NCBI GenBank assembly: GCA_030390025.1
Contig: CM059427.1
Location: 188,914,001 to 188,978,000 of the forward strand
Source of the DNA: Squalus acanthias
Taxonomy: Eukaryota
Direction of reading: 5' to 3'
Length of the DNA stretch: 64,000 nt
Each line of letters opens with the position of its first letter. The stretch's first letter is position 1. Shown here in pieces: positions 5,101-57,234 of this stretch. The translations under genes and the position numbers were made by a program. Below the pieces are notes generated by a model. The model worked only from the letters and a program-made list of their open reading frames with translations. It made no database searches and was not told where the DNA came from.

Positions 5101-5163
5101 ATTACTCAAGTCACATTTAATCATTCTTTTAAAATCAAATATGATTGCAGTAAGATTGCCTAC

Positions 5164-23983: not shown

Positions 23984-24037
23984 TCATTGATAATCAGGTA
24001 TGGCCCTCCGAGATCGCCCTGATTCCTTCCTCAGAGC
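23984..24037 (-). CDS. Receptor cytoplasmic/terminal exon (ALRKESGRSRRAIPDYQ*)
   Basis: Strong acceptor ttccctgctcccactttccatcag| after a 265-nt intron; phase 0; open for 17 codons then TGA. Confidence 0.6.
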   Translation of the reverse strand, partial: ALRKESGRSRRAIPDYQ

Positions 24038-24302
24038 CTGATGGAAAGTGGGAGCAGGGAAGTTATTGCAGTTTGAATCAGGAAAAATATTCAAAGCTAT
24101 CAGAATTCACCAAATTTGGAACAATTGCTTCCTTTAACTGATGATTCCTTTAAATTCAGTACAATGTACAATATTTAAATGAAATTTCAAAATATAGTTT
24201 GTGACCACATAATATCTGTTCAACGAACATCAGTTTTCTCAGTGTCAAGTGACAGCTCGGCACTAATTCCTGATTTACTGGAAAGCTTAAAGAAATTCTT
24301 AC

Positions 24303-24406
24303 TCTGGTCATCCTCTTCAAGCAGCAAATTAGTCCAACAGCAACGCCCAGTTTAACCAACAAGTAGCCCGAAACTGTGAAGATCCAAATCTCCGGAAGTG
24401 GTCTCA
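24303..24406 (-). CDS. Receptor transmembrane exon (VRPLPEIWIFTVSGYLLVKLGVAVGLICCLKRMTR)
   Basis: Acceptor ttgtccttcacag|, phase 1 in and phase 0 out (AGA|gtaaga). Hydrophobic span with a central K, then CC and a basic stop-transfer KR. Confidence 0.82.
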
Positions 24407-24976
24407 CTGTGAAGGACAAAGTTGAGATTTTAGTTTCACTCTCCATCTCGTTTAATATTTAAATACTCCTGCCAGTCAATCTATAAAATATGTGGAAAGT
24501 GAAAACATTCTGCTTTAAACACTGGGAGCCAGAGAACCAAATATTTGTGTCAAGACCGAGTCCACGTTGTGTTCTTTTTGTCACATTTTATGTGTCTGGA
24601 TTTGACTATTTTCATCAGATTCTTGTGGGTGCAATAGTTTTGAATTAAAGTGAGCAGCTCTGAGTGAATGAAAAGGGATTGAATAAACTCAAAATTGGGT
24701 CATTCATTGTCTAAACTGTCAAACTGGATGTGAAAGTGTTGTCCTGACCAGAGTGGCAGAATACAGATTCACACCTGAGATTCCCCAGGTGGCGAGTTCC
24801 CAATCTCGGCTGTGCTATCTGGGGAGACATTAACCATCAAGGTGTGAGACAGCCACAGATCTGTAACTGGTATGTAGTAAAAAAAAAACTATTTTGACAA
24901 GGTGCAATTTTGTTGAAACTATTAAAGTTTAACAGTGTTACCATGCATGTTTTTGAAAGTTTTGTGTGTTGTTGTA

Positions 24977-25731
24977 GGGCTGGATTTTCATAGGGCTTTG
25001 GAGGCGGGTTTGGAGGCATGTGGGGGGTTAAAATTGTGAAAAGTGGTGGGCGGACCTGATCCCGACTCCATTCCGCCTCCACGCAATTTTGATAAAATCG
25101 TGTGCGGTGTTCCCAACTCCGTCCCGCCTCCAAGAGGCGGGAGAGGCCATTAAAGCCCTCAACAATCCCTAAATTGGCTCTGTAATGCCATTTTGAAACG
25201 TTTTAGCTAGTTTAACCCTTTTCCAACGTGAAGCACGCCTGATGTGAAACACACCAGTGAAACCTGCCGGGAGCACAAGTGGATGGCTGACTATCAGCTG
25301 CAGGTCCACTATTACAACGGAGATGTGATGAAGGTAGTAGTAGTATTAGGTCTGAAAGTCACCTCTGATGCTGCTGCATTGAATGTCTTCAGAGACTGCC
25401 TGGCCTTTGCTGTGAGAGGACCTGGATGCAAAAAAATTCTCATTTTCTCTCTCTCTCTCTCTCTGAGCTGCTGCTCATTTTGCATCCAGGTCCACTCACA
25501 GCAAAGGCCACGCAGTCTCTGAAGACCTTCAATGCAGCTGCAATGATGACATCATCAGAGGCGACTTTCAGACTGAAACCACTAATTGGTTCATGGGTTC
25601 CCACATGCTGGAACTCAATTGACCAATTAATTAAAAATTGCATCAATCTCCCACATCCAATTGCAGTCGGGTGGATAACACAAAATGCGGTTGACACGAC
25701 CCCAACCCGCCCCAGTATCAAAATCCAGCCC
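24977..25731. mobile_element. TIR MITE (family B) with an internal palindrome
   Basis: TIR gggctggatttt / aaaatccagccc; TSD GTA/GTA. Confidence 0.85.
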
Positions 25732-27111
25732 GTAATGTTTATCTATGGTACATTTAATTTAATATTTTATTTCAAAATCTTAATTAATATAATATTGTAA
25801 CGCTTGATGAGGTGGACAATTTCATCAGTAGACAGACTCCTAGTATAATGATTCTCTACTGGGTCATCTCCTATGGCATTGATCATGGTCAAGGTTATCA
25901 AACCTAATTTTAAACTATTAAACAGAACATTGAATGTGATTTACCACGTTATCCCCTAATCATTTGTCTTTAGTTTACTCTCCATATCAATTGATTTCTG
26001 TCCAAGGCCTGCCGGCGTGATGCTAATGAGGCCCGTCCGTCAACATGGACCGGGCCTGCCGTCAGCACCATCGGGCGGCCGTCCATCGCCCTCCCGCTCC
26101 GCCGGTCAGACACCCGATAGTTCACATCGACCCCAAGTTCCTCTGGCGGGGTTTCTAGTGTGGGAGCGAACGCAGGATCCACGCACTGTGCTGCTCGGTG
26201 TGAAACCTTGCCTTGTAATATTGCTGAGCCTATTATTAACACTCAGTGCGTGGACAGGTGCTGTTGAGGTGGTGAATTGCTGTCTGGTGCCTATCACGGA
26301 TACTCTGTCGGAATTCCCACTGCTCAGTGAATCACAAGACCTTTGTGAGAATCCGGCATAAATAATTACACATAAATAAAGAAAAGGGATGAGGGAAGAT
26401 AGTCGATCCCTCCAGTTAATCCTTCAATGTAATCTTACAGTCTCATCTTCACAGCATCCAACTGCCTCTTATACGAGTCAAGAGATTTTGCTCCAGACCA
26501 ATATTTTCTGTTCCATACATTATCTTATAAAGCTCTTTCAGGTCCCCTTTCATTCCTCTGCTTTTAAATCTGCAGGTTCCAAGTCCGAGAAATTTAACCT
26601 TCACCCAAAATGGGTGGTAAAATGGCGAAGTAATTGCTTTGAGCGCCGGTCCCTGCCGGTCTGGGGCCCTTATTGTATTAAGCAGACGATCTGCAGATGG
26701 CAATCGGGCGCCCGATGCAGGTCACCAGTGGGGGTCTGATGAATACCGGCCAGCTTCAATGCTGAACCAGCCCACAGGTAGGTCCTTTGGGGAGCCAAAC
26801 CCGTGGGCTTGTGTGCGGGTTGAACCCAGGCCGCAGTATTATTGTGGAGCTTAGAGAAGCACTCCATCTCCCCCTGGCTCCACAGAAATGCAACTGTTAA
26901 AAGGTTTTCCGGCCATTTCTTGAGTGGCCTCCAACGGTCCTGTTAAACACCAGTGGTTCATCCACTCAAAACCTGGTACAGTGAGCTGGAGCTGGCCCGG
27001 CATAAGCTCCGCCCATCTGTACACCAATTTCAATCGGGGTACTCCAGTTGGCATTAGGACCCAGAATTGCATGTGCAAGACGCCTAAAGCCTGTTTCAGG
27101 AGGCCACCCAG

Positions 27112-27515
27112 AGCCTCGAGTTTCCTGCTCTTGTGCTCACAATGCACGAGCCCTCAGTTAGAATGAGAGTGATGAGGCTCCGATGTGTCCAGGATCAGCT
27201 GAGACAGGCAGAGAAGAAGAGTTTCTCTGAGCCTGAAGAGTGCAGACTTTCAATTGCAATTTTTGCAGCTGTGAATTGTGTTTTGCTGTGATTTCTTTTT
27301 AACAATCTGCCTAAGATTCGGATTGATTTGGGGTCTGAAATCCAATGGAAACAGCTTCTGAACCATTTTTGCTGTAAAAATAAATGCTTGCCTTGTCTCA
27401 ATGCGAATCTGAGACATCCAGACCGGGAAGGTTCCAAACTCGATCCCAGGCTGTGCTGTGTTATCTGAGGGGAGATTTTCTGAGGCTTTCCCCCGTGATC
27501 GAGCCTCACACACAG
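27112..27515. repeat. Local duplicate of 29313-29730
   Basis: Colinear similarity, highest over the acceptor/exon segment; includes a SINE-like piece. Confidence 0.9.
27158..27198 (-). CDS. Candidate alternative secretory/poison exon, copy 2 (ADPGHIGASSLSF*)
   Basis: Near-identical duplicate of 29359-29399 with the acceptor retained. Confidence 0.35.
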
Positions 27516-27654
27516 CCAGTGATCAGAAAATCATGGACGGCGAGACAGGAAACATACTCTTTCCTCTCCTTACTCTCTGACCAGGCCACATGCCTTCAGC
27601 CTCCATATCTCAAACTGCACACTCCTTCCAACCTTCCCATACAATTTTGACTTG

Positions 27655-28958
27655 AAATAGAAACATAGAAACATAGAAGATAGGAGCAGGAGTAGGGCAT
27701 GCGGCCCCTCGAGCCCGTTCCGCCATTTAATGAGATCATGGCTGATCATCCAAATTCAGTACCCTGTCCCTGCATTCTCCCCATATCCCTTGATCCTTTT
27801 TAGCCTTAAGAAATATATCTAACTCCTTCTTGAATATATTTAATGAATTGGCCTCAACTGCCTTGTGTTGTGGAGAATTCCACAGGTTCACCACTCTCTG
27901 GGAGAAGAAATTCCTCCTCATCTCAGTCCTAAATGGCTTACCCCTTATCCTTAGACTGTGACCCCTGGTTCTGGACTCCCCCACCATCGGGAACATCCTT
28001 CCTGCATCTAGTCTGTCTAGTCCTGTTAGAATTTTATAAGTTTCAATGAGATCCCCTCTCATTCTTCTAAACTCTAGCGAATATAAGCCTAATCGACCCA
28101 ATCTCTCCTCATACATCATTCCTGCCATCCCAGGTATCGTCTGGTGAATCTTCGCTGCACTCCCTCCATGGCAAGAACATCCTTCCTCAGATAAGGTGAC
28201 CAAAACTGCACACAATACTCAAGGTGTGGTCTCACCAAGGCCCTGTACAACTGCAGCAAGACATCCTTGCTCCTGTACTCGAATCCTCTCGCTATGAAGG
28301 CCAACATACCATTTGCCTTCTTAACCGCCTGCTGCACTTGCATGCTTACCTTCAGCGACTGGTGCACAAGGACATCCAGGTCTCGTTGCACTTCCCCTTT
28401 TCCCAATCTATTGCCGTTCAGATAATAATCTGTCTTCCTGTTTTTGACAGCAAAGTTGATAACCTCGCATTTATGCACATTATACTGCATCTGCCATGCA
28501 GCTGCCCAATCACCCAACCTGTCCAAATCATATTGGAGTTTCTCTGCATCCTCCTCACAGCACACACACCCACCAAGCTTTGTGTCGTCTGCAAACTTGG
28601 AGATATTACATCTAGTTCCCTCATCTAGTTCCCTCATCTAGATCATTTATATATATTGTGAATAACTGGGGTCCTAGCACCGATCCCTGTGGTACCCCAC
28701 TAGTCACAGCCTGCCACTCAGAAAAAGACCCGTTTATTCCAGCTCTTTGCTTCCTGTCTGCCAACCAGTTCTCTATCCAAGACAGTACCTTACCCCCAAT
28801 CCCGTGTGCGTTAACTTTGCACGCTAATCTCTTATGCGGGACCTTATCGAAAGCCTTCTGAAAGTCCGAATACACCACATCCACTGGTTCTCCCTTATCT
28901 ATTCTACCAGTTACATCCTCAAAAAATGCCAGTAGATTAGTCCAGCATGATTTACCTG
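27655..28958 (-). mobile_element. CR1 LINE 3' part
   Basis: RT ORFs, frameshifted by a 13-bp tandem duplication (catctagttccct) at about 28610-28640. Confidence 0.93.
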
Positions 28959-29358
28959 CATACGGCGTGTTCACAGACTCAAATAACGTGGATGGTAGAC
29001 TTGGCTCTAGGGTGGCATTGTCTCTGCTTTTCACAATTCCAGGATATGTCTCTTCTATATCAGCTTACAGAAGGCTGCACATTAGCAGATTTGTACCTGA
29101 GGGGCCCTCCCAACCAGTGCTCACTGACTCTGAGAGCAAATTCAGCAATTCCACTCTCCCAGTGTAATTTGCTTTGACAGCAAAATGAAAAAGCTGTTTC
29201 CCTTGGTTTCCACCACAAAATCAATCAGTCCGAATCCCCGTGAACATTTTCCCCCTTCCCATGATCTGCCTGTGGGGTTCCAAAATGAGCTAATGAGGGC
29301 TAGTGAATCTGCAGCCTCGAGTTTCCTGATCTTGCGCTCACAATGCACGAGCCCTCAG

Positions 29359-29399
29359 TTAGAATGAGAGTGATGAGGCTCCGATGTTTCCAGGATCAG
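29359..29399 (-). CDS. Candidate alternative secretory/poison exon, copy 1 (ADPGNIGASSLSF*)
   Basis: Strong acceptor ctcttcttctcttcctgtctcag| about 430 nt after the D4 donor; phase-1 reading ends in TAA. Confidence 0.4.
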
Positions 29400-29827
29400 C
29401 TGAGACAGGAAGAGAAGAAGAGTTTCTCTGAGCCTGAATAGTGGAGACTTTCAACTGCAATTTTTGCAGCTGGGCATTACTTTTTGCTGAGATTTATTTG
29501 GGCATTCTGCAGCCGCATTCTGATTGATACTGGGTCAGAAAACCAATGGAAACTGCTTGTGTACCATTTTACTATCAAATATAAATGCTTGCCGTGTCTC
29601 AGTGAGTTTACCAAGAGCATAGTTGAGACATACAGAGCAGGAAAGTTCCAAGCTCGATCCCAGGCTGTGCTGAGTTATCTCAGGGTAGATTTTCTGAGGC
29701 TCTGCCCCACTGTAGAGCCTCACACACAGGATATAAAGGAGGGGCTACTTCTGGCAACAAGAACAATAAGTGACCAGAATTTTCTATCCAGATTATAAAT
29801 ATAAAGAGCAAACCCTGAGTCACTTAC

Positions 29828-30097
29828 CACTGGGCTCCAGATAGTACGGGACTAAAACCCGGGGCCTGTTTTGATAAAACAAAGCACATATCCAGTTCCC
29901 TCTGCCTCTGTCAGCTTTCTGAATAATCAGTCTCAATGATTTCTCTTCCCCATTCTGTCCATTCCATGTGTTTTCTTCAACAGTTTTGCCATCACTATTG
30001 ATCCAAACAAGTCTCATTGATTCAGTGACATCAGAGACAGAGCAGGTCAGGGTAACGGTGTCTCCCTCAGTCACTGCATCAGATGGTTCAGCTGTGA
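29828..30097 (-). CDS. Receptor D4 exon: C2-type Ig domain with WxC
   Basis: 78-nt intron from D3; acceptor cttgtttacacag|, donor AGTG|gtaagtg, 270 nt. Sequence EGDTVTLTC..LVW..GNWIC. Confidence 0.9.
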
Positions 30098-30175
30098 CTG
30101 TGTAAACAAGAAAATCATTTAGATTTCAAACAATAACTTGATCATCGGAAAGAATGACAACATTCTGTCTCCTAC

Positions 30176-30529
30176 CTTTAACTGTGATTAGTTTAATGGT
30201 CACCATGTTATATGATCCCAGAGAACATGTGTAATCTCCGGCATCTTCAAACAGTACAGGGACAATCCTCACACTGAAGTTCTTGCCATTAAACTTTGTC
30301 TCTGTGGGCACCAGTCGACTCCCAAAGTAGGTCCTGTTTACATTGATGAGCTGAGATATCGAAGCAGATGCTATTGATTTCTCCTGATTTTGAAGATGAT
30401 GTGACCTCCAGGTCCATGCAGTAGTGTTGTAAGAGTGAACATAATTCTTATAATAACCATAGCAAATCAGGTCGAGTTCACTGTGATCTGTGCCTGATCG
30501 ATAAAGTGTGTAACTCTTCCCATATAAAT
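30176..30529 (-). CDS. Receptor D3 exon: V-type Ig domain
   Basis: Acceptor tctctctattacag|, donor AAAG|gtagg, 354 nt, phase 1-1. Sequence LDLIC..AWTW..FGSRL..FSVRIVPVLFEDAGDYTC; the 5' part was translated by hand beyond the ORF track. Confidence 0.9.
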
Positions 30530-30923
30530 CTGTAATAGAGAGACAGAGAACAACGTGTTAGATTTTTACGGTTGTTGAGTTACAGAGAAAATAGAGAATA
30601 ATTATTGGCCACAATCATATAAACCTATTTTGCATTTTGATTATCATAATTTTATTTGATCAAGTTTTTGTCAAAGTTATAAACTGTTTAAAAAATGTAC
30701 AACTTGGGTTAATTTGATATTCATAAGGAAACAGAATTTTTTAAATGAAACATTTTTGATTTTTAGTATGATGAGATTTTTGTGCCCTGGGCGACACCAT
30801 GACATCACAGGCCCAATAGTCTGAGGCTGGGCCAGTAACCTGAAGTCCTGCTGGTGGCGGCTGCAGGCTACATAGAACTACATTTTGCACAGAGCAATTT
30901 TGCAATGTTTTAAATATGCCCAT

Positions 30924-31689
30924 GGGTCAGAAATTCGGCTGTTGTCGGGTGAGTACGCGCTGTGTACTCACCCGTAAGGCCACCTGAAGTGTCGGTTTCC
31001 TGCATGCACTGCGCATGCGCAGGAAACCGGAACTTCCGTTCCCCTGAAGGGAGGTGTTCAGAAGTCGAACGCGTGCGCGGGAGAGGCTGCACGCACGCAC
31101 CGAACTTCAGTTGTTTTTTCAGGTTTCTCCGGGAAGGTAAGTATGAAGAAGCTGCACTTTTAAGAAGGAGGCGCAAGGCCTTTTTTTAACAAGGTAAGTG
31201 ATTAATTAATTACAATTTAAACATTTTTTCAACAGTTTCATCTTTTTTAGATACTTTAAAAGAAAGGTAAGTTTATTTTTAGCACCGTTAAAAAGTATAA
31301 TTAACTTTTTTTCAAATTTAAATTTTTGTTTAAAGTAGTTAATTTATGTAACTTATAGTTATTTTAAAAATGTGATGTTTTATTTTAAATTTATTTGAAG
31401 TTTAAGTGTGGTTTTGGGGCCGATCTCTATTCATAGATTTGACAGGTCTTCCTGTCAAATCTATGAATGAAAATGCCCTGCTAGGATTGGCTCTCCACGG
31501 CCCACGTGATCCCAGGGGACGCTTCGAACTAACTGCGCCCCTGGGATACACAAGCACTGCACGCTGGCAGCTGGAGGAGGCCCAGGACCCGAAGTCCTCG
31601 TGGGCCCAAAGCACAACTGCAGGCGCGGTAGTCAAGTACGTGCGCGATGCTTGCACCCGCAGGAAGCCGGAAAGCCGAATTTCTGGCCC
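30924..31689 (+). mobile_element. MITE family A, copy 3
   Basis: TIR gggtcagaaattcggc / gccgaatttctggccc. Confidence 0.88.
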
Positions 31690-32233
31690 CTTTGCTTCAG
31701 GCAAGTGCAATCCTCATTTACCTGGAATAATTTTTCAAAGAAGATCCCATGCAGAATTTCATGAATTTTGGCAAAGTTCTTCCTCCAGTGCTCACCTCAC
31801 CCATGTGAGATGCGCACACGTCTGCTCCATGGGCCTGTCCCACTTTAACATAATCCTTAAAGCAAGGATGCGGTTATTTGAGTTGGTGTCAACTAGCAGG
31901 TTTTTTCAGTGAACATCTGTCTCCTTCTGTATTTAACATTTTGCACAGAGTTTACACCTGTTCATTATTATCTTATTATCATTCTTCCTTCCTTCAAATT
32001 TTCTCAGTAAGACTAACCCAGAGTTGTTTTAATTGTTGCTGCAATACAACTTGGCAGCTGAAAAAACTGGAATGTTGGGATTCCTTTACTTAGTGTCCAG
32101 AGAGCAATCATGATGCTTTCTTCCAGAAACATGCGGGTAATTTGGCTTTGCGCGATAGTGTAAAATGATCGATAGTGAATTGGCAGGACGTTTTACATCT
32201 CACAATGTTGTTGTACTATTGCACAAATTCAAA

Positions 32234-32815
32234 GGGGGTCATTTTAAACCCCTAAAATGGGTGGGTTTGGGTCGGGTGGGTTGTTAAAATGTTAAAAATC
32301 ACAAACCCTACCCCACCCCGCCCACCTCCGGTTTTAATGATGGTGGGACGGGGGACAGGACGACCAACCCACTCCCAGGAGGTGAGTTGGTCATTTAAAT
32401 ATTATAACAAGGCTGCTTCGTTCAGATTTAATCTCCATTTAAATTTAACACTGGCCGGCCAGGATTCCCAGGCCTCATGATACCCGACACCTAGAGGGAG
32501 GCGTGGACTGCTGGATCCTGCAGGTAAGTGCCTTTCCAATTACCTGCTGGAGCCAGCTTACCTGCTCCCCACCCCATCAACCCCTGATTGGTCACAGCCC
32601 CGAGCCATGATCTCCCACCGACCCAACTCTTCCGATCTCACCTCCACCACCCCGGTCTTTCTGATCCCTCACTCCCTTCTCCGAACTGCTTCGCTGCGGT
32701 CTCCGATCTCCCCACGATCCTTCCGATCTCCCCTCCGGCCTTCGATCTAAATCCCCCCACCCCCACGCCTCCATTCTCCCCTCTACCCAATCCTCTGGAA
32801 CTCCCTCCCTGGGAT
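32234..32815 (+). mobile_element. TIR element end (family C)
   Basis: ggggtcattttaaacccc...; homologous in reverse orientation to 47400-48144. Confidence 0.65.
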
Positions 32816-32944
32816 GCAATGTTACTGAAAGCATTCGCTGTTTTTGTTTTATACTCCGGTACCACTTATAAAAAAAATCCAACATTTCAGATTTTCTACC
32901 TTCTGATGTTGAACAGCTTCATTTACTTTGACATTTCTAGACAG

Positions 32945-33092
32945 GAAAAATTAGTACTTGAAATGCCATAGCATATAAGGCGACGGACCAAGTGCTGGAA
33001 AATGGGATTAGAATAGATAGGGCTTGATGGCCGGGACAGACACGATGGGCCGAAGGGCCTCTTTCTGTGCTGTATAACTCTATGACTCTATC
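32945..33092 (+). mobile_element. CR1 3' tail
   Basis: Matches the tail at 63655-63790. Confidence 0.85.
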
Positions 33093-38500: not shown

Positions 38501-38519
38501 ACCGAAACCCCTGAGATGT

Positions 38520-43716: not shown

Positions 43717-44749
43717 TCATGATGTGGAGATGCCGGCGTTGGACTGGGGTGGACAAAAATGAGAAGTCGCACAACACCAGGTTATAGTCCAACAGATTTA
43801 TTTAATTTTACAATTTTCGGAGCTGTTCGCTCCTTCCTCAGGTAGGTTAGCAGTGAGAGAATCTCCCAGAATTCACAATTTAAACACAGACAAAATCTAT
43901 TCAAATCTTTCCCTACATCAAAGACACACTAAGAGCACAGCCAAGACAATGAGATGTGTCCCAGGGGGTCCAACGTGTCAAACCACCTGCTGGCTGCATA
44001 TCCTGTCAATTTGTGTTGGTTCTTCTGTTAGTCTTTTTTAAAAAAAACAAACACCTGGGAAGACCGGCCATGATGTCAAGTCACGTTCTGTATCGTGACA
44101 TGAACCCGATATCGCGATTGAGGCCATCCTCATGAGTGCGGAACTTGGCTATCAGTTTCTGCTCTATGATTTTGCGCTGTCGTGTATCCCGAAGGCCACC
44201 TTGGAGAACGCTTACCCGCAGATCCGAGGCTGAATGCCCCTGGCTGGGAACACTTCAGCTGCCAGGGGCATTCAGCCTCGGATCTGCGGGTAAGCGTTCT
44301 CCAAGGCGGCCTTCGGGATACACGACAGCGCAAAATCATAGAGCAGAAACTGATAGCCAAGTTCCGCACTCATGAGGATGGCCTCAATCGCGATATCGGG
44401 TTCATGTCACGATACAGAACGTGACTTGACATCATGGCCGGTCTTCCCAGGTGTCTGTTTTTTTTTAAAAAGACTAACACAAGAACCAACACAAATTGAC
44501 AGGATATGCAGCCAGCAGGTGGTTTGACACGTTGGACCCCCTGGGACACATCTCATTGTCTTGGCTGTGCTCTTAGTGTGTCTTTGATGTAGGGAAAGAT
44601 TTGAATAGATTTTGTCTGTGTTTAAATTGTGAATTCTGGGAGATTCTCTCACTGCTAACCTACCTGAGGAAGGAGCGAACAGCTCCGAAAGCTTGTAAAA
44701 TTAAATAAATCTGTTGGACTATAACCTGGTGTTGTGCGACTTCTCATTT
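43717..44749. mobile_element. Penelope-like element 3' end in inverted (palindromic) arrangement
   Basis: About 490-bp inverted arms; GIY-YIG C-terminal-like peptide LRVSVLQGGL..RKIIEQKLIAKFRTHEDGLNRDIGF; 13-bp flanking duplication ttgttaaaagaag. Confidence 0.85.
44661..44697 (+). ncRNA. Minimal hammerhead ribozyme motif in the Penelope pLTR
   Basis: UAC-CUGAGGA-a-GGAGC(gaaca)GCUCC-GAAA-GC-UU-GUA; a variant copy lies on the minus strand at about 43809-43844. Confidence 0.65.
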
Positions 44750-46814: not shown

Positions 46815-47375
46815 TAATTTTTTTTTAGTCGCTTATGGGATCTGGGCATGGCTGGCAAGGCCAGCATTTATTGCCCATCCCTAGTTGCCCTTGAGAAGGT
46901 GGTGGTGAGCTGCCTTCTTGAACCGCTGCAGTCCATGTGGTGAAAGTACTCCCACAGTGCTGTTAGGGAGGGAGTTCAAGGAATTTGTCCGAGTAACGAT
47001 GAAGGATCGGCGATATACTTCTAAATCAGGATTGTGTGTGACTTGGAGGGGATCTTGGAGGTGGTGGTGTTTCCATGTGCCTGCTGCCCTTGTCCTTCTA
47101 GGTGGAAGAGGTCACGGGTTTGGGAGGTGCTGCCGAAGAAGCCTTGGCGAGTTGCTGCAGTGTATCTTGTAGATGGTACACACTGCAGCCATGGTACGCT
47201 GGTGGTGCATCGAGTGAATGTTTAAGGTGGTGGATGGGGTGCCAATCAAGTGGGCTGCTTTGTCCTGGATGGTGTCGAGCTTCTTGAGTGTTGTTGGAGC
47301 TGCATTCATCCAGGCAAGTGGAGCGTATTCCATCACAGTCCTTACTTGTGCCTTGGAGATGTTGGAAAGGCTTTT
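46815..47375 (-). mobile_element. Crack/L2-related LINE 3' end
   Basis: KAQVRTVMEYAPLAW..LKKLDTIQDKAAHLI. Confidence 0.75.
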
Positions 47376-47399
47376 GAGGCAGATAGGGAGTGGTGAGAC

Positions 47400-48144
47400 C
47401 GAATTTAGCGACAGGGCCTGATCAACATTTAAAATCACTGTTTCCCGCCTGCAGCCAGCCTGAAGGAAAGGCTCGAATTTAAAGGCCAGGGACACCAGGC
47501 CACAGAGAGGAGGGAGTGAGGGACTGGTGGGGTTGTCGGAAGGCAGGCGTGGGGTATCGGAGGTCCGAGTTTGAGGTCGGAAGGCCGGAGGGGAGAGATC
47601 GGACAGCCAGAGTTCGGAAGTCGGAAGGCCAGAGGGAGTATTGGAGGAGGGCTGGAAAGCTGCAGGGGAGAATTCGGAAGGCCGAAGAGGGAATTGGAGA
47701 TCAGAGAGAGGTCGGAAGGCCGGAGGGGAGGTCAGAAGGCTGGAGGGGTGATCAGAGATCGGAGGTCTCGTGGGGGGTTGTCGGAGGCCCTAGGGTAAGT
47801 TGGGGGGAGATAGGAAGGGTCGGGGTGGGGTGCCTGATAGCGGGCGGGTGGCGAGGCAGAAACCCTGGATCCAGCAGTCCTCGTCACCCTTTAGCTGGCG
47901 GGTTCCCCGAGCCCACAGTTAAATTTAAAATGGTGGATCACTATGAGGCACCCAACCCCATTAGAATATTTAAAGTGCGAACTCACCTCCTGGGAGCAGA
48001 TTAGCTGCCCCCCCACCCTCGTCCCACCTCCGTTAAAACCAGAAGTGGGCGGGTTGGAGGCAAGTTGGGGCCAGGATTCAGATTTTTAACTCTAACATCT
48101 CACCCAACCTCAAGCGAACCATTTTTTGGGGTTAAAATTCCCCC
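47400..48144 (-). mobile_element. TIR element end (family C)
   Basis: Ends ggggttaaaattccccc; internal ggaggtcggaaggcc-type repeats. Confidence 0.65.
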
Positions 48145-48676
48145 AGTGTATCTCTTTTCTCTGCCACGTTCTTCTTGCTTTCCTGAAGGTGTTAACTCCT
48201 TATCATAGTCCGAGTTCCAGGGACACTTGACATCCTCTGGGACTTCAACCAAGTGACACATCTAACAGGTTCACTGGACAGCAAACAGGAGCAGTGTTTC
48301 TGGCCAATCTTATTCCTGTCCCATCTTATTCCTGTCCCATCGCGCTGAGGCCCATTACTACAAGGGATCTATTGGTTTGGTAACAGAATTCAGTACATCT
48401 GACAGAGAATGTGCCACTGTACAGATCATAATACTCTCTGTGGGGTAGATTCCTCGGTATGATATTTCTGGTGAAATTGTCGAAAAGTTTTTACTCATGT
48501 TGACCATTTCTGGAGAAACAATGAACAAAATCTTTCACCTGGTTGTTTTAATGAGAGATGCTCTCTGCACTGGGTGATATAAATCTCACATGATCCTGGC
48601 AATCTCTCATCATTACACATGAAATTATTTACGGAGAATCATTTTATTTTTCCTTTCTAGACTTTATCCCACTCAC

Positions 48677-49018
48677 CTTTGATCCCAAATATTTCATATC
48701 GTTTCAGGATTTTATTACTCGGCTGTGTTTGAGTCAAGATGAACAATCCCGCAAGTTTAAATGTGGGTTTTCCAATTCTCAGATTAATGGTACCACGATT
48801 CCATTTTATCTTCTCGGACAAGTCGCTATTTGTAAAGTCATTGTTCCATTGTGCACCCCAACGATTCAAACTCCTTTTGTGAAAAGTAACCAGCCGCTGG
48901 ATTTCTTGCCCTGAGTGTGGTTTCCATTCCCAGACAACAGGGCCATTCCCAGGATTGTCCGGTCCGTTTAATGGAATGTCATCTCCCTCATCCAAAAAAT
49001 AAATATGATTTGGGTTTC
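48677..49018 (-). CDS. Receptor D1 exon: V-like Ig domain without cysteines
   Basis: Acceptor ttcctcgttctaacag|, donor AAAG|gtgagt, 342 nt, phase 1-1. Sequence EGDDIPLNG..VVWEW..NLRIGKPTFKLAGLFIL keeps V-set spacing with both Cys replaced. Confidence 0.8.
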
Positions 49019-51142
49019 CTGTTAGAACGAGGAACAATGTAAGTATTTAAATATTTAAATTGCAACTCCTTAATCCCATAATTGTAATGATTAATATCGG
49101 AGTTCATCTATTTACTATCTATGGGAACCTGAGCATACATTCAGAAGAGAGAGAAGCAAAGCTGGAAACCGAAGGCAGAAAATTACTAAGCGAGTTTGGA
49201 AGGCAGTGGAAACAAAGGCTAGGAAAAAAGCAACAAAGGTTTTGGCAGTGCTTGCTGGTAAATCCTTCAATGCAAGGAGTCCAGTGAATAAGGCAGATGA
49301 GCTGAGGCCACAGGTAGACATAGATATCATAGATATTACTGAAACATGGCTTAAAGAAGGGCAGGAATGGTAACTCAACATTCTTGGTTATACAGTTTTC
49401 AGACAAATATTAACTGGGATAGAGTCAGTGTAAAAGGTATAGAGGGTGCAGAATTTTTAAAATGCATTCAGAAGATCTTTTTTAGCCAGCACGTCGCTAG
49501 CCCAACAAGAGAGTTCTGGACTAAGTTTTAGGGAATGAAGCTGGGCAGGTGGAAGGGGATCAGTGGGGGAGAATTTTGTTGGTAGTGATCATAATTCAGT
49601 TAGATTTAACGTAGTTATGAAAAGGGACAAAGATAGACCAGGAGTAAAACTTCTCAATTGGAGAAAGGCCAATTTACTAAGCTGAGATGTGATTTAGCAA
49701 AAATGGAAACAGCTACTTGAAGGTAAATCAGTGTCAGAGCAGCGGGATGCATTCAAAGAGGAGATAGTCAGGATTCAGTGCAAATATGTTCCCACAAAGA
49801 AAAAGGGCGGGACTCCCAAATCTAAAGCTCCCTGGATGTCAAGGAGCATACAAGGTAGGATAAGGAAAAAAAGGAAGCTTATGTCAGATACCAAGAGCTC
49901 AATACTGCAGAAAGCCCAGAGGAGTATAGAAAGTTCAGGGGTGAAATTAAAAAATAAATTAGGAAAGCAAAGAGAGGGCATGAAAAAGTATTGGCAAGTA
50001 AAATCAAGGAAAAACCCAAAGATGTTTTAGAGTAAGAGAATAACTAAGGAAAGAGTAGGGCCTAATAGAGACTAAAAATGGTAACCTATGTGTGGTGACG
50101 GAAGATGTGGGTATGGTTCTTAATAAACTTTGTGTCTGTCTTCACAAAAGGGAGGGACGATGCAGACATTGTAGTTAAGGAGGAGGAGTGTGAAATGTTA
50201 GATGGGATAAAATAGTGAGAGAGGAAATATTAAGGGGCTTAGCATCTTTGAAAATAGATAAATCGCCACGCCCGGATGAAATGTATTCCAGGCTGTTAAG
50301 AGAAGAATGGGAGGAAATAGCGGAAGTTCTGACCATCATTTCCCAAACCTCTCTGGCTACAGTCATGGTGCTGGAGGACTGCTAACATTGTACCATTGTT
50401 TAAAAAGGGAGACAGGGATAGTCTGAGCAATTACAGACCAATCAGCCTAACCTCGGTGGGGGGAAATTATTAGAAAAAATTTATTTAGAAAGGCACAGAT
50501 TAATCAAGGAGAGTCAGTGTCGATTTGTTGAGGGAAGGTCCTATCTGACTAATTTGATTAAATGTTTTGAGGAGGTAACAAGGCGGATCAATGAGGGTAG
50601 CGTGTCTGATGTAGTCTACATGGATTTAGCAAGACTTTTACAAGGTCGCACATGGCAGACTGGTCAGAAAAGTAAAATCCCATGGGATCCAAGGGAAAGT
50701 GGCAAGTTGGATCCAAATATGGCTCAGTGGCAGGAAACAAAGGGGAATGGGCGACAGTTGTTTTTCTGACTGGAAGGCTGTTTCCAGTGGGGTTCCACAG
50801 GGCTCAGTACCAGGTTTCTTGCTTTTTTGTGGTACATGTCAATATTTTGGACATCAGTGTAGGGGTCATGATTAAGAAATTTGCAGGTGATAAAAAATTG
50901 GCCGTGTAGTTGATAGTGAGGAAGAAAGCTGTAGACTGCAGGAAGATATCAATGGACTGGACAGATGGGCAAAAAAGTGGCAAACGGAATTAAAACCGGA
51001 GAAGTGTGAGGTAATGCATTTGGGGAGGGCTAACAAGGCATGGGAATACACAATAAATGGTAGGACACTGAGAAGTGTAAAGGGACAGAGGGACCTTGGA
51101 GTGCATGTCTACAGATCCCTAAAGGTACCAGGACTGGTAGAT

Positions 51143-54100
51143 AGAAACATAGAAACATAGAAAATAGGTACAGGAGTAGACCATTCGGTCCTTCGAGCCT
51201 GCACCGCCATTCAATGTGTTCATGGCTGAACATGCTACCTCAGTACCCCATTCCTGCTTTCTCGCCATACCCCTTGATCCCCCTAGTTGTGAGTGTTATA
51301 TCTAACTCCCTTTTGAATATATTTAGCGAACTGGCCTCAACAACCTTCTGTGGAAGAGAATTCCATAGATTCACCATCTCTGGGTGAAGAAGTTCCTCCT
51401 CAGCTCAGTCTTAAATGGCTTCCCCTTAATCCTTAGACTGTGACCCCTGGTTCTAGTTTTCCCTAACATTGGGAACATTCTGCCCACATCTAATTTGTCT
51501 AAACCAGTCAGGATTTTAAATGTCTCTATAAGATCCCCCCTCATTCTTCTGAACTCCAGAGGATACAAGTTCAGTTGACCCAATCTTTCTTGATATGTCA
51601 GTCCGGCCATCCCAGGAATCAATCTAGTGAACCTTCGCTGCACTCCCTCAATAGCAAGAATGTCCTTCCTTAAGTTAGGAGACCAAAACTGCGCACAATA
51701 CTCCAGGTGTGGCCTCACCAAGGCCCTGTACAACTGCAGCATCACCTCCCTACTCCTGTACTCAAATCCCCTTACTATGAAGGCCATCATTCCGTTTGCT
51801 TTCTTGACTGCCTGCTGCACTTGCCTTCCCACCTTCAGTGACTGATGTACCATGACGCCCAGGTCTCGTTGCACCTCCCCTTTCCCTAATCTGCCACCAT
51901 TCAGGTAATAGTCCACCTCTCTATTTTTACCACCAAAGTGGATAACCTCACATTTATCCACATTGTACTTCATCTGCCATACATTTGCCCATTCACCCAA
52001 CCTGTCCAAGTCACTCTGTAGCCTCCTAGCATTCTCCTCATTGTTCACACTGCCTCCGAATTTAGTGTCATCCGCAAATTTGGAGATATTACATTTAATC
52101 CCTTCGTCCAAATCATTAATATATAATGTAAACAGCTGGGGTCCCAGCACCGAACCCTGCGGTACCCCGCTGGTCACTGCCTGCCATTCTGAAAAGTACC
52201 CATTTACTCCTACTCTTTGTTTCCTGTGTGCCAACCAGTTCTCAATCCACATCAACACATTACCCCCAATCCCATGTGCTTTAACTTTGCTCACCAATCT
52301 CTTGTGTGGAACCTTGTTGAAGGCCTTCTGAAAGTCCAAATACACCACATCTACTGGTTCCCCCCTGTCCACCCTATTGGAAACATCCTCAAAAAATTCC
52401 AGAAGATTTGTCAAGCATGATTTCCCTTTCACAAATCCATGCTGACTTGGACCTATCATGTCGCCACTTTCCAAATGGTCTGTTATGACATCTTTAATAA
52501 TTGCTTCTATCATTTTACCCACGACCGATGTCAGGCTGACCGGTCTATAATTCCCTGCTTTCTCCCTCCCTCCTTTTTTAAAAAGAGGGGTTACATTGGC
52601 CACCCTCCACCCCATCGGAACTGATCCAGAGTCTAAGGAATGTTGGAAAATGATCGTCAATGCATCCACTATTTCCAAGGCCACCTCCTTAAGTACTCTG
52701 GGATGCAGACCATCAGGCCCCGGGGATTTTTCAGCCTTCAGTCCCATCAATTTCCCCAATACCTTTTCCCGACTAATAAGGATTTCCCTCAGCTCCTCCC
52801 TCTTACCAGATCCTCTGACCCCTTTTATTTCCGGCAGGTTGTGTGTGTCCTCCACAGTAAACACCGAACCAAAGTACTTGTTCAATTGAAATGCCATTTC
52901 CTTGTTCCCCATTACGACTTCCCCTGTTTCCGACTGCCGGGGACCTACGTTTGTTTTTACTAACCTCTTTCTTTTTACATATTTATAGAAGCTTTTGCAG
53001 TCCATTTTAATGTTATCTGCAAGCTTCCTTTCATATTTTATTTTCCCTGCCCTAATCAAACCCTTCGTCCTCCTCTGCTGAGTTTTGAAGTTCTCCCAGT
53101 CCCCGGGTTTGCTGCTACTTCTGGCCAATTTGTATGCAACTTCCTTGGTTTTAATACTATCCCTGATTTCCCTTGTTAGCCATGGTTGAGCCACCTTCCC
53201 TTTTTTATTTTTACGCCAGACCGGGAAGTACAATTGTTGTAGTTCATCCATGCGATCTCTAAATGTCTGCCATTGCCCTTCCACTGATAGCCCCTTAAAT
53301 ATCGCTTGCCAATTTAACCTCGCCAATTCACGCCTCATACCCTCAAAGTTGCCCTTATTTAAGTTCTGGACCATGGTCTCTGACTTAACTGTTTCCTTCT
53401 CCATCCTAATGTAGAACTCCACCATACTATGGTCACTCTTCCCCAGGGGGTCTCGTACCACAAGATTGCTGATTAGTCCTTCCTCATTACACAACACCCA
53501 GTCCAGGATGGCCTCCCCTCGAGTTGGTTCCTCAACATATTGGTTTAGGAAACCATCCCTTAAACACTCCAGGAAATCCTCCTCCACCGTATTGCTTCCA
53601 GTTTGAGTAGCCCAATCTTTATGCATATTAAAGTCACCCATGATAACTGCCGTGCCTTTTTTGCACGCACCTCTGATTTCCTGTTTCATACCCTCCCCCA
53701 CCTCACTACTGCTGTTTGGAGGTCTGTACACAACTCCCACTAACATTTTCTGCCCTTTGGTGTTCTGCAGCTCAACCCATATTGATTCCACATCCTCCAA
53801 GCTGATGTCCTTCCTAGCTATTGCATTAATCTCTTCTTTAACCAGCAATGCTACCCCACCCCCTTTTCCTTTTATTCTATCCTTTCTGAATGTTGAATAC
53901 CCCTGGATGTTCAGTTCCCAGCCTTGATTGTTCTGGAGCCACGTCTCTGTAATCCCAATCACATCGTATCTGTTAACATCTATTTGCACAGTCAATTCAT
54001 CCACCTTATTACGGATACTCCTTGCATTAAGACACAGAGCCTTTAGGCTTATTTTATTAACATCCTTTGTCCTTTTAGACTTATGATTTAGTATGGCCCT

Positions 54101-54222
54101 TTGTGTTTCTTGCCTTTGTTTACTCGGCCTTCCCCTATTGTTTCTCACCCTTCCAACATTTGTTTCTGAATGCATATTACTTCCCCCTGTTTTGCTACAT
54201 AGGTTCCCCTTCCCCTGCCATA
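51143..54222 (-). mobile_element. Young CR1 with near-intact ORF2
   Basis: (acatagaa)n tail; flanking duplication tagata. Confidence 0.95.
51371..54175 (-). CDS. CR1 ORF2, APE endonuclease + reverse transcriptase (934 aa)
   Basis: Uninterrupted ORF with [26 protein letters not shown] and FADD; frameshift only at the extreme C-terminus (FFTQRW*). Confidence 0.93.
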   Translation of the reverse strand: MHSETNVGRVRNNRGRPSKQRQETQRAILNHKSKRTKDVNKISLKALCLNARSIRNKVDELTVQIDVNRYDVIGITETWLQNNQGWELNIQGYSTFRKDRIKGKGGGVALLVKEEINAIARKDISLEDVESIWVELQNTKGQKMLVGVVYRPPNSSSEVGEGMKQEIRGACKKGTAVIMGDFNMHKDWATQTGSNTVEEDFLECLRDGFLNQYVEEPTRGEAILDWVLCNEEGLISNLVVRDPLGKSDHSMVEFYIRMEKETVKSETMVQNLNKGNFEGMRRELARLNWQAIFKGLSVEGQWQTFRDRMDELQQLYFPVWRKNKKGKVAQPWLTREIRDSIKTKEVAYKLARSSSKPGDWENFKTQQRRTKGLIRAGKIKYERKLADNIKMDCKSFYKYVKRKRLVKTNVGPRQSETGEVVMGNKEMAFQLNKYFGSVFTVEDTHNLPEIKGVRGSGKREELREILISREKVLGKLMGLKAEKSPGPDGLHPRVLKEVALEIVDALTIIFQHSLDSGSVPMGWRVANVTPLFKKGGREKAGNYRPVSLTSVVGKMIEAIIKDVITDHLESGDMIGPSQHGFVKGKSCLTNLLEFFEDVSNRVDRGEPVDVVYLDFQKAFNKVPHKRLVSKVKAHGIGGNVLMWIENWLAHRKQRVGVNGYFSEWQAVTSGVPQGSVLGPQLFTLYINDLDEGIKCNISKFADDTKFGGSVNNEENARRLQSDLDRLGEWANVWQMKYNVDKCEVIHFGGKNREVDYYLNGGRLGKGEVQRDLGVMVHQSLKVGRQVQQAVKKANGMMAFIVRGFEYRSREVMLQLYRALVRPHLEYCAQFWSPNLRKDILAIEGVQRRFTRLIPGMAGLTYQERLGQLNLYPLEFRRMRGDLIETFKILTGLDKLDVGRMFPMLGKTRTRGHSLRIKGKPFKTELRRNFFTQRW

Positions 54223-54754
54223 TTAGATAAGGTGGTTAAGAAGGCATACGGGTTACTTTACTTTATTAGCCAAGGCATAGAATATAAGAGCAGGGAGGTT
54301 ATGCTAGAACTGTATAAAACACTCGTTAGACCACAGCTAGAATACTGCATACATTTCTAGTCACCACTTTACAGGAAAGATGTGATTGCACTACAGAGGG
54401 TACAGAGGTGATTTATGAGGATGTTGCCAGAACTGGAGAATTTTAGCTATGAGGAAAGATTGGATAGGCTGGGGTTATTTTCTTTGGAACAGAGAAGGCT
54501 GAGGGGAGATTTTATTAATGTGTATCAAATTATGAGCAACTTAGATAGAATGGATAGGAAGGACCTATTTCCCTTAGAAGAAAGGTCAATAACCAGGGGA
54601 CAAAGATTTAAAGTAATTGGTAGAAGGATTAGAGGGGAGTTGAGGAGAACTCTTTTCACCCAGAGGGTGGTGGGGGTCTGGAACTCACTGCCTGAAAGTA
54701 TGGTAGATGCAGAAACCCTCATCGCATTAAAAAATACTTGGATATGCACTTTAA

Positions 54755-55462
54755 GGGGCAAAGCAACTAGCGCCCGGGCGCGGCGACGCCAACACCTCCC
54801 GTAAATTCAGCGGGAGGTTAGCGGCGGTGGTAACCATTAGCGCCCCGCGGCGCTGCACCACCGGCGATGATGTCATTGCCGTGCGCAGCGCCCCGCTCCC
54901 GACCCAGCCACGATCTTCGGTAGCGCCCCCTGACTTACCGCCGGACGCTATGTCTGACGGGGTCAAGGGGGCCTACCTGCGGCCGGGGCGGCGCTAATTA
55001 AAGGCGAGGTGACGGGCGGCCATTTTTGTTGCTGGCCGCCTGCCAGCACCTAGCTCCACTGCCGTCCCCGGGTTCCTGACCTGCCCCCTCCCCCACCCCC
55101 GTGGAGTGCCGGCTGCGCTCCATGTGCCCGGCAATTCTCTTGAGTGCCGGGCCCTTTTGCTGGCACTCCCGATCCTCGGTGGCCCAGCTGGGCTCCGGGT
55201 TGCGCTGCGCAAGGCCCCTCCCCTTTAAGAAGGGGAGGAAGACCTGCAATACCGCGGCGCGACGTGCCGCAGCTCATGGCGTTGCTGCTCATGGCGCCGC
55301 AATGTTCCCTCGCAGTGCCCCAAGAGGGAGGTGAGGCGCTTCCAGTAGCGCTCCGTTTCCCTCTTGGGGCACTACCACTCAATTTTGGCCATGGGGGCTC
55401 TAGTTTTTCTGGGCCCTGGCGAAGTTAGCGGCCCAAAGGGGGCGCGACTAAATTTCTCCCCC
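54755..55462. mobile_element. GC-rich Harbinger-like MITE (family E)
   Basis: gggg...aatttctccccc ends with TSD TAA/TAA, inside a CR1 tail. Confidence 0.8.
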
Positions 55463-56439
55463 TAAGTGCCATAAACTGCAAGGCTACGGACCAAGAGCTG
55501 GAAAGTGGGATTAGGTCGGATCGCTCTTTTTCAGCCGGCACAGGTACGATGGGTCGAATGGCCTCCTTCTTTGCCGTAAATTTCTATTATTCTCTGATTC
55601 TATGGTTTACAGTCATATTTTTACATTGAACTGATCATGTTGCCTTCACTGCAGGCACTATTACAGAGAAAAACAGAACAATTCCATTACATTCAGTTTA
55701 TTATAGAGTTATCAGAAGATTCATCATTACTACAAAAAATAATCAAAATTAAGAGAGAGGACATGGTTAATTCCAGGTTACAGTAAATAAAGGCTCCAAA
55801 TCTCCTCGTGACTCCTGGTCTACAGGGGGCATTATCAGGGTGGACAGGATCTCAGGGAGAGAAATTGGGGCAGGATAAGGCTATGTTGGGTTTTCACCCC
55901 ACTTGTCCTGTGACGGGGTTTCCCGAGGTGGGCGGAGATCAGATGGTTCCTGGTCTGCACCCCCCTTGTCTGGAAAGACACCGTGACAGAAATAAATTAG
56001 TTCTTGGAAACTGACTTGCAGCCTCTTTCCACCAGGTGTTTTGCCTTATCTGTGAAAGGTGACAACTGTGGCTGTGACGGTGATGAATGCACTTTATGCG
56101 AATGCATTCCGATACTTCCAGGTGGCCTCTGGTGACATTGGGCCCATCATTCAGTCAATAGTTCATTGCTACCATTCACTGAACTGCATTTTCACGTACT
56201 TTCATTCCAAGGATATCATTTAAGTAACAGTCATTGGATACTCAAGGATAACAGTAAAATCCTCATTGTAACCATTATTTTATTTACATTTTCATAAGGA
56301 AACTTAGCTAAAGCAGTAAATCTCATGTACCTGTGATTCTAGATTAAACAGCAATTCACATCACAATTACCAAAAACACAATGGCACCGTGTACACTGTA
56401 TTCGCAGTAAAGTTTAAACACAAAGTTTGGACTCTAAAC

Positions 56440-56825
56440 TAGAATTACACAGAATTTATAGCACAGAAACAGGCCATCGGCACAACTGGTCTATGCTGCC
56501 CACCTACTCAGACAACGAGGGGGCAGACACAGGAACCACCTGATATCCGCCCACCTCGGGAAACCCCGTCACAGGACAAATATTAGCGAGTTTCCCCTTG
56601 AATGCATCGATGCTAATCACCTCAACTACTCCCTGTGGTAGCAAGTACCACATTCCAACCACTCTTTGGTTAAAAATTTGCTCCTGAATTCCTTAATGGA
56701 TTTATTCATGACTATTTTATATTTATGACCCCTAGTTTTGAACTCCCCCACAAGTGGAAACATCTTCTCTACGTCTACCCTGTCAAACCCCTTCATAATC
56801 TTAAAGAACTCTATTAGGTCACCCT
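56440..56825 (-). mobile_element. CR1 3' fragment
   Basis: GDLIEFFKIMKGFDRVD..TRGHKYK. Confidence 0.8.
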
Positions 56826-57104
56826 TTGCTATATGCAAGACTGGATGGATAGATGGATGGATAGAGTTATAGATGGATCGGGAAAGGGAGTTGAAGAGCA
56901 ATGAGAAATATGCTAATATTTTTCATTTTATTAAGTTGCTCCATTGTTGCAATCTGAAAAGTGAACTTACACATCCTTTTTAAAGGAGCAGGGACATGAA
57001 AATAAAGACCTTACTTGCTTGCTGAATACTAGCTGGGTGCATTCATTAAACTCGATGATAAAGTAAAACAATATGAATGTGATTGGTAGAAATAAGGCAC
57101 TTAC

Positions 57105-57192
57105 TTTGTGTGAAAACAGACGGAAGTAGAAACACAAAGAAACTGATCATCAAACCAGCTGGCATTTTGCTGCAGAAAAATCGTAGCTTCAT
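57105..57192 (-). CDS. Receptor leader exon (MKLRFFCSKMPAGLMISFFVFLLPSVFTQ)
   Basis: Hydrophobic signal-like peptide; phase-1 donor CAAA|gtaagtg at 57104. An upstream acceptor (tttcttacag|, exon starts 57214) implies a non-coding first exon. A second in-frame ATG lies at 57165. Confidence 0.75.
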
Positions 57193-57234
57193 TTCACAGA
57201 TTCCGTCTCTTTCCCTGTAAGAAATATACATATA

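Follow-up and report, generated by a model that had tools for sequence, protein, structure and literature searches.

Gene structure at the locus

The window analysed here is a 64,000-nucleotide (nt) stretch of the Squalus acanthias genome (contig CM059427.1, positions 188,914,001 to 188,978,000), and the subject of this work is a gene on its minus strand that encodes a predicted receptor with four immunoglobulin (Ig) domains, D1 to D4. Coordinates are positions of the whole window, and the exons and their borders were read directly from the sequence. According to a tblastn search with proteins of the family described below, the window contains this gene, copies of long interspersed nuclear elements (LINEs) and what may be the leader exon of an adjacent gene. 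An earlier note on this DNA had placed seven exons over 33 kb of transposable-element (TE) debris, and the introns do hold LINE copies with RVT_1 and endonuclease domains. Six of these seven exons, coding for the leader, D1, D2, D3, D4 and the transmembrane (TM) segment, hold. The seventh does not and is replaced in the model given here. The exons are as follows.

57192-57105, minus strand: exon 1, start codon and signal peptide; 88 nt, ATG at 57192, ends in phase 1, donor GT 57104-57103
49018-48677, minus strand: exon 2 (D1), V-like domain without cysteine; 342 nt, phase 1 to 1, acceptor AG 49020-49019, donor GT 48676-48675
45731-45462, minus strand: exon 3 (D2), Ig domain with the canonical cysteine pair; 270 nt, two NxS/T sites, YAC on the F strand
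30529-30176, minus strand: exon 4 (D3), V-set-like domain with a cysteine pair; 354 nt, three NxS/T sites
30097-29828, minus strand: exon 5 (D4), Ig domain of C2-like type, its F strand carrying WxC (NWIC); 270 nt
24406-24303, minus strand: exon 6, stalk and TM helix; 104 nt, ends in phase 0; central lysine in SGYLLVKL, then a CC pair and KRMTR
20009-19905, minus strand: corrected exon 7, acidic, tyrosine-free tail of 35 codons; acceptor AG 20011-20010, phase 0, stop TAG 19904-19902
24037-23987 plus stop 23986-23984, minus strand: exon 7 of the earlier note; an open frame behind an AG, unsupported as an exon

All introns among the six upstream exons are of the GT...AG type, with phases 1,1,1,1,1,0. 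The intron between the D3 and D4 exons measures 78 nt, and the tail exon sits 4.3 kb past the TM exon. The complete corrected model amounts to 1533 nt or 511 codons. The leader is up to 86% identical to leaders of family proteins, whose tblastn matches span 57061-57234; further in-frame ATG triplets at 57231-57229 and 57165-57163 make the start codon ambiguous but leave the mature protein unaffected. The CC pair marks the cytoplasmic end of the TM helix. Several details noted earlier agree with this reading: the D2 and D4 exons are both 270 nt long, the last residues of D1 are IK and those of D3 are VK, a V codon split by the intron comes next in both cases and no linker is present at either junction, and the WxC motif does stand on strand F of D4.

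A chondrichthyan gene family

The window gene was searched exon by exon, and full-length searches were done with database homologues (P0005) and with a family profile built from 30 sequences (A1). The D3 exon matched 61 proteins at E ≤ 0.001, nine of them at E ≤ 1e-30, among 1.84 billion representatives. All 78 matches of homologue P0005, a protein of 509 amino acids (aa) from Pristiophorus japonicus with the same architecture, were chondrichthyan, and 115 of the 118 matches of profile A1 were chondrichthyan family members; the remaining three were weak matches to two loach proteins and a shark protein of the Fc-receptor-like kind. The gene had been described in the earlier note as hidden and unique. 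It belongs instead to a multigene family with predicted homologues in at least 18 chondrichthyan species, including 63 proteins with tails that carry tyrosine-based inhibitory motifs of the immunoreceptor type (ITIMs). Among the species are sharks (Pristiophorus, Heptranchias, Heterodontus, Scyliorhinus, Chiloscyllium, Carcharodon, Cetorhinus, Rhincodon, Stegostoma, Hemiscyllium, Ginglymostoma), rays and skates (Pristis, Mobula, Hypanus, Hemitrygon, Narcine, Leucoraja, Amblyraja, Rhinoraja) and one chimaera (Callorhinchus). Sturgeons, paddlefish, bichirs, eels, Albula and coelacanth have remote kin at 26-37% identity.

Nearly all family members are annotated as 'uncharacterized protein', with stray labels such as VCAM1-like, CD276 homolog, CEACAM5-like and obscurin-like; the nurse-shark 'obscurin-like protein' in GenBank (AGQ17915.1) is one of them. 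Forms of about 900-1000 aa are common. In other species many members share chromosome-scale records and often have adjacent LOC numbers, an arrangement suggestive of tandem arrays. In one skate cluster the 468-aa products lie on Logan contigs of about 2 kb; these look like transcripts because such short contigs are hard to square with unspliced genomic DNA.

The exons in the window retain all 21 invariant and 47 of the 49 near-invariant columns of profile A1, and on sequence grounds the copy is intact. Its D1 is 72-74% identical to the D1 of P0088, P0062 and P0005, its D2 up to 88% identical to family D2 domains, and its TM exon 85% identical to the TM segment of P0089. When about 170 family proteins were searched against the window by tblastn, they matched the seven exons, a 33-residue stretch at 5147-5245 and three weak or TE-related places. 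Extra Ig exons or TM and tail exons of the ITIM type were not found in the window by this search.

Transcription of the locus

The check on RNA proposed in the earlier note could be made for the junction of D4 and TM exons. Part of the segment 29828-30529 is contained in 24 public sequencing runs, none of which is recorded as RNA; the kind of run is guessed. Contigs, not reads, of four runs were aligned to 23901-29900 at 90% likeness, two of the runs being from organism A (X1, X2) and two from organism B (X5, X6). Contigs of X1, X2 and X6 (three of the four runs, covering two organisms and two studies) contain a joint between 24406 and 29828, which is absent in X5. The joint skips 5421 nt, and the skipped piece is bounded by CT..AC, the minus-strand equivalent being GT..AG. 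Depth was 42-156 in the TM-exon bin and 37-395 in the D4 bin, against 0-24 in non-repeat intron bins, so that exon bins reach 10-100 times the depth of intron bins. The spliced joint together with the depth in the exon bins indicates that spliced RNA is present in these runs, and the junction between D4 and TM falls exactly where the model puts it.

The last coding exon

The arithmetic of the earlier model is correct: seven exons join in phase to 1479 nt, or 493 codons. Its last exon is not supported. The joint from 24303 to 24037 that it requires was found in 0/4 runs in contigs over 23901-29900. The bins that contain this exon have a depth of 2-24, which is intron-like when compared with the 42-156 of the TM-exon bin, and the low-depth contigs that cover it are colinear with the genome through the TM donor. 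None of 145 family proteins matches the peptide of 17 residues that it would encode (best E 1.9), and the exon was missed when family proteins were searched against the whole window by tblastn.

The same tblastn search points to another exon. Nine proteins of the family matched 20009-19905, and the encoded peptide is 85% identical to the C-terminus of P0089, 81% to that of P0091, 79% to that of P0088 and 69% to that of P0005. In P0005 the TM exon corresponds to residues 439-472 and the 20009-19905 exon to residues 473-507, with nothing between them. The encoded tail ends in a conserved motif of the LQTLNSDxDL type. The last coding exon is thus likely to be 20009-19905, and since the cytoplasmic exon of the earlier model is wrong, the 493-aa protein ending in 'IPDYQ' is probably not made. 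For annotation, the corrected 3' end is the practical result of this work.

Low-depth contigs in all four runs cross the TM donor region unspliced (24303-24159, minus strand), and a skate database model, P0143, ends in the identical read-through residues RVRIS. There may be an isoform that retains the intron and has another tail.

Domain composition

The earlier proposal of a receptor with four Ig domains agrees with the domain calls, and with the TM exon the protein is a type I receptor with a lysine in the middle of the membrane. The D2 exon scored above the Pfam cut-offs for Ig_2 (33.1 bits), Ig_3 (32.1 bits) and I-set (28.6 bits), and also for C1-set, V-set and ig, and the D4 exon matched Pfam ig with 32.6 bits (cut-off 21.8). 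The D3 exon reached 24.4 bits for V-set, slightly below the cut-off of 26, and full-length homologues reached 44-45 bits. The D1 and TM exons matched no Ig family in Pfam, D1 giving HTH_24 alone (E 0.1), and a search with D1 against PDB sequences returned nothing usable, with one chance match at E 1.1. In the same type of search with D3, neither CD4 nor LAG-3 was among the 56 rows; there were weak matches to pIgR, MXRA8 and shark VNAR (best E 0.0032). The family profile of D1 does align with that of D3 (hhalign 91.7%, E 7.9e-7), and the nearest clusters of the D1 of a homologue are V-set; taken alone, that D1 is generically V-set-like. Pfam matches of D2, D4 and D3, the D1-D3 profile alignment and the V-set neighbours of D1 together give an ectodomain of the V-C2-V-C2 type.

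An internal V-C2 duplication had been suggested from the exon lengths and borders. Among the domain profiles of the family, D1-D3 (91.7%) and D2-D4 (92.2%, E 5.8e-7) are indeed the best pairs, and BLASTP aligned D2 with D4 at E 2e-5 and D1 with D3 at E 0.099. The pair D2-D3 also scored 87.9%, however, and the domain pairing is consistent with a V-C2 duplication with moderate support.

Two tail classes

The family proteins divide according to their membrane segments and tails. Of 195 proteins compared, a set that includes a few non-family members, 29 have a TM segment with lysine of the YLxVKL type (Lys-TM) and a short tail, 63 have ITIM-like tails, and none has both. The ITIM-like motifs occur in long tails and read IHYxSI and VIYAQI. 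The combination of Lys-TM and the LQTLNSDxDL-type tail end is common to sharks and skates, which indicates that the activating module is old and that the tail is not motif-less.

The TM and tail exons of the window gene match the Lys class exclusively (27 proteins in the case of the TM exon). Its ectodomain exons resemble the two classes to about the same degree, with the following best identities.

D1: 72% to a Lys-TM member, 73% to an ITIM member
D2: 86% to a Lys-TM member, 88% to an ITIM member
D3: 78% to a Lys-TM member, 83% to an ITIM member
D4: 90% to a Lys-TM member, 91% to an ITIM member

D1 is the least conserved ectodomain exon, which would fit a ligand-binding tip. The distribution of the classes was examined on a quick maximum-likelihood tree of 84 rows, consisting of the window D3 and the membrane-proximal D3 of proteins with a class label (26 Lys-class, 57 ITIM-class); proteins without a label were excluded, as were further D3 copies in proteins with several cassettes. 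On this tree the class label requires 18 changes, at least 10 of them forced by well-supported branches, compared with a mean of about 22 for shuffled labels, and 13-20 of 500 shuffles gave a number as low as 18. Activating and inhibitory forms stand next to each other within species. Closely similar ectodomains are found with alternative modules, either a charged TM segment and short tail or ITIMs, and the interleaving of the classes, as read from the alignments and the tree, has the pattern of such receptors. Alternative splicing to an inhibitory form within the window was considered as well and rejected; the tblastn search found no exons of the ITIM type there.

Another possibility is that the gene is a non-signalling relic, a decoy or an adhesion molecule, either with a membrane lysine that has no adaptor or as a transcribed pseudogene. 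In its favour, no adaptor is known, the locus is crowded by LINE insertions, and the low-depth contigs run unspliced through the TM donor. Against it, none of the seven exons is interrupted and their splice sites are canonical, the 21 invariant residues are all retained, sharks and skates have the Lys-TM and the tail motif in common, and the spliced joint is present at exon-level depth. We regard a relic or decoy as very unlikely.

Relation to CD4, LAG-3 and G6f-like

Comparison of profile A1 with all PDB sequences gave 785 matches at E ≤ 0.01. Carcinoembryonic antigen (CEA) took rank 1, LAG-3 ranks 2, 3, 4 and 8, pIgR rank 5, MXRA8 rank 6 and CD4 rank 7. The first rank of CEA is the sum of many weak stretches, the best of which scored 18.2 bits, whereas the best single stretches belong to LAG-3 with 22.9-24.8 bits. 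These run from the F strand of the family D3 through the entire D4, including WxC, and they match both D1-D2 and D3-D4 of LAG-3 (22.9-24.8 and 20.1-21.7 bits, respectively). The E-values per stretch for LAG-3 and CD4 are 6.5e-5 to 5.5e-4, and CEA, pIgR and MXRA8 are overall in the same range. In the ESM-Atlas, which is feature-based and gives neither an alignment nor an E-value, the nearest named clusters of P0005 are 'g6f-like isoform X9' and 'putative g6f-like' (similarity 0.97, with 211 and 204 of 256 features shared), followed by CD4 and CD4-1 clusters at 0.96.

In layout the protein resembles LAG-3 and CD4: there are four domains in the order V-C2-V-C2, WxC is present on strand F of D4, there is no linker from V to C2, and internally D1 pairs best with D3 and D2 with D4. 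The gene could be an orthologue or recent duplicate of CD4 or LAG-3, a co-receptor for class II molecules of the major histocompatibility complex (MHC) with a diverged tail; this layout and the PDB ranking, in which LAG-3 occupies ranks 2-4 of 785 with a best stretch of 24.8 bits and CD4 rank 7, speak for it. The sequence details do not. According to Takizawa 2023, the CD4/LAG-3 family is marked by a WxC motif in the F strand of D2 as well as of D4. The window gene has NWIC in D4 and YAC in D2; in the family the tryptophan of D4 is near-invariant and the D2 consensus is LYxCEV. The tail has neither the Cx(C/H) motif of CD4 nor the (F/Y)xxL(D/E) motif of LAG-3, and the CC pair at the membrane border is neither CxC nor CxH. 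The CD4-specific Pfam families (C2-set PF05790, CD4-extracel) were matched neither by the exons nor by the homologues. That paper also identifies shark CD4, with a CxH tail and an extra tail exon, and shark LAG-3, with (F/Y)xxL(D/E), as other genes. In contrast to both, the present family is multigene, with dozens of paralogues that carry ITIM or Lys-TM tails. Orthology to CD4 or LAG-3 is therefore highly improbable, as the earlier note had argued from the absent tail motifs, and the separate shark genes bear that out. One of its arguments has to be given up: the missing intron in D1 is no distinction because D1 is uninterrupted in shark CD4 and LAG-3 too (Takizawa 2023).

The Atlas neighbours raise a second possibility, namely that the family is the chondrichthyan counterpart of the teleost G6f-like protein, a collagen receptor of thrombocytes, and that the gene acts in activation of the thrombocyte or erythroid lineage and not as a paired receptor of leukocytes. 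Both proteins are type I membrane proteins with four Ig-like domains, and the two nearest named clusters of P0005 are g6f-like. According to Hughes 2012, G6f-like signals through its own tyrosine-based activation motif of the immunoreceptor type (ITAM) and a YxN motif, and YxN is conserved in G6f and G6f-like. The window gene has neither motif, its tail containing no tyrosine. The Atlas gives neither alignment nor E-value, its CD4 clusters are nearly equal (0.96), and the protein searches with P0005, A1 and the sturgeon protein P0032 returned no sequence named G6f-like, CD4 or LAG-3. G6f-like is furthermore described as a single receptor and not as a tandem family with ITIM partners. We consider this counterpart relationship unlikely, although the YxN motif reappears among the remote bony-fish kin.

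These kin, P0032 and P0050 (sturgeon, bichir), end in YxN of the NIYEN type and have neither Lys-TM nor ITIMs. The YxN ends may link the family to G6f and G6f-like.

Taken together, the comparisons suggest that the ectodomain is distantly related to the CD4/LAG-3/G6f-like group and an orthologue of none of its members, the similarity being weak. G6f-like is itself said to have been related to CD4/LAG-3 by Ohashi in 2010. A more speculative scenario, to which we assign a low probability, is that CD4 (activating, through LCK) and LAG-3 (inhibitory, ITIM-like) are the survivors of an ancient paired V-C2-V-C2 family of which the chondrichthyan family keeps the ancestral state, with many activating and inhibitory members. 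The remote kin in sturgeon, bichir, eels and coelacanth might be seen in this light, and the family might bind MHC-like ligands. The family provides a concrete outgroup for the origin of the MHC class II co-receptor CD4 and the checkpoint receptor LAG-3.

Comparison with paired receptors and skate MDIR

Paired activating and inhibitory families of the Ig superfamily (IgSF) include KIR, LILR, SIRP and CD300, and in teleosts NITR, LITR and DICP. The present family is similar to these in having near-identical ectodomains with either a charged TM segment and a short tail or ITIM tails, and in having many genes on the same chromosome-scale records in other species. It is different in the V-C2-V-C2 cassette with a cysteine-less D1 and WxC in D4, which also occurs doubled (about 900-1000 aa), and in the activating tail, which carries a conserved acidic motif of its own. 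A sequence relationship to KIR, LILR or NITR was not seen.

Little is on record about germline-encoded activating and inhibitory receptors of cartilaginous fishes, and the MDIRs of skate are the only ones in the literature searched. The MDIRs, reportedly presented by Cannon in 2006, are said to be a multigene family with four types of Ig domain, a charged-TM form and ITIM forms. Like the present family they are modular, activating and inhibitory IgSF receptors of a cartilaginous fish, and it could be that the family is the MDIR family already described from the clearnose skate. The comparison was made by description, and the description fits: there are four domain types, a variable number of domains, and both charged-TM and ITIM forms. 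The best PDB matches of D3, moreover, are pIgR and MXRA8, and Ribeiro 2011, which lists the deposited MDIR proteins ABC86796.1, ABC86797.1 and ABC86799.1, likens MDIR to CD300, TREM, FCAR and pIgR. The similarity of the present family to pIgR is weak, however (20.7 bits), and the description of MDIR domains as CD300/TREM/pIgR-like sets them apart from those found here. None of the 78 matches of P0005 and none of the 118 matches of A1 came from Raja eglanteria or was a named MDIR. Ten clusters, nine of them skate, with 35 listed members contained no MDIR either; one skate cluster that was opened joins orthologues of Amblyraja, Leucoraja and Rhinoraja at 90% identity. By description and by entry names, identity with MDIR appears quite improbable.

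No paper naming the family was found in searches that included CD4/LAG-3, G6F-like, MDIR, DAP12 and shark paired receptors, supplements being outside their reach, and for the nurse-shark obscurin-like entry nothing was found in main text. The part of a review on fish immunity that was available (Smith 2019) held nothing relevant, and in the available part of a shark single-cell paper no passage matched the terms searched. The earlier suggestion of a distinct, possibly undescribed lineage stands insofar as the family is unnamed in the literature found, with MDIR compared by description; the gene is not unique, and the kind of system, paired IgSF receptors, is already known.

Proposed function

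In view of the above, we consider it probable that the window gene is an intact, transcribed member, of the activating type and coupled to an adaptor, of a chondrichthyan multigene family of paired IgSF receptors. A central TM lysine is typical of DAP12-type partners, the models being KIR-S, TREM, SIRP-beta and NKp44. The lysine in the TM helix would pair with an acidic residue, an aspartate, of an ITAM adaptor of the DAP12 type, and this pairing would be needed for both surface expression and signalling. Binding of a ligand by the fast-evolving membrane-distal domains could then lead to activation of the Syk/ZAP-70 type, while paralogues that share a near-identical ectodomain but carry ITIMs would signal in the opposite direction by recruiting SHP phosphatases. 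The tail itself carries no signalling motif of the kinds looked for: the earlier note had seen no Cx(C/H), (F/Y)xxL or ITAM in its version, and the corrected tail, which contains no C, F or Y, likewise has none.

Several points weigh against this interpretation. Adaptor coupling is deduced from the central TM lysine. The conserved tail motif suggests that the tail has a function of its own. ITIM-bearing partners are established among the family proteins of the databases, not in the genome from which the window comes. The runs are RNA by guess, and at 90% likeness the spliced joint could stem from a close paralogue or from a related species. The junction evidence from sequencing data covers D4 to TM, and the junctions E1-E2, E2-E3, E3-E4, E4-E5 and TM-tail are derived from the genomic sequence.

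Given its size, its conservation between chimaera and rays, its clear division into Lys-TM and ITIM forms and an ectodomain layout like that of CD4, LAG-3 and G6f-like, the family could be a main innate recognition system of cartilaginous fishes, NK-like (natural killer) or myeloid.

Other features of the window

The 33-residue match at 5147-5245 (minus strand) is to residues 40-72 of P0168, with 70% identity and E 4e-8; the matched stretch is hydrophobic and resembles a signal peptide. The next gene of the family may have its leader exon here, with the body lying before the start of the window.

Intron 1 contains an uninterrupted LINE open reading frame (ORF) of 934 aa with endonuclease and RVT_1 domains at 51374-54175 (minus strand), and in a second LINE, at 9909-12851, the endonuclease and reverse transcriptase parts are split by one stop. 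A duplicated segment at 27112-29730, a candidate for a stop-containing exon, flanks a LINE; outside the LINE its bins have a depth of 0-11, which is at intron level. The stretch 13791-14303 is a minisatellite of 12.2 copies of a 42-nt unit (94% matches), whose open minus-strand frames read a repeat of 14 residues. Intron 3 holds a near-perfect palindrome at 43815-44690 that consists of two arms of 430 nt, 99% complementary and 16 nt apart, so that the two strands have the same ORFs; a genuine inverted duplication and a fold-back artefact of the assembly are both conceivable.

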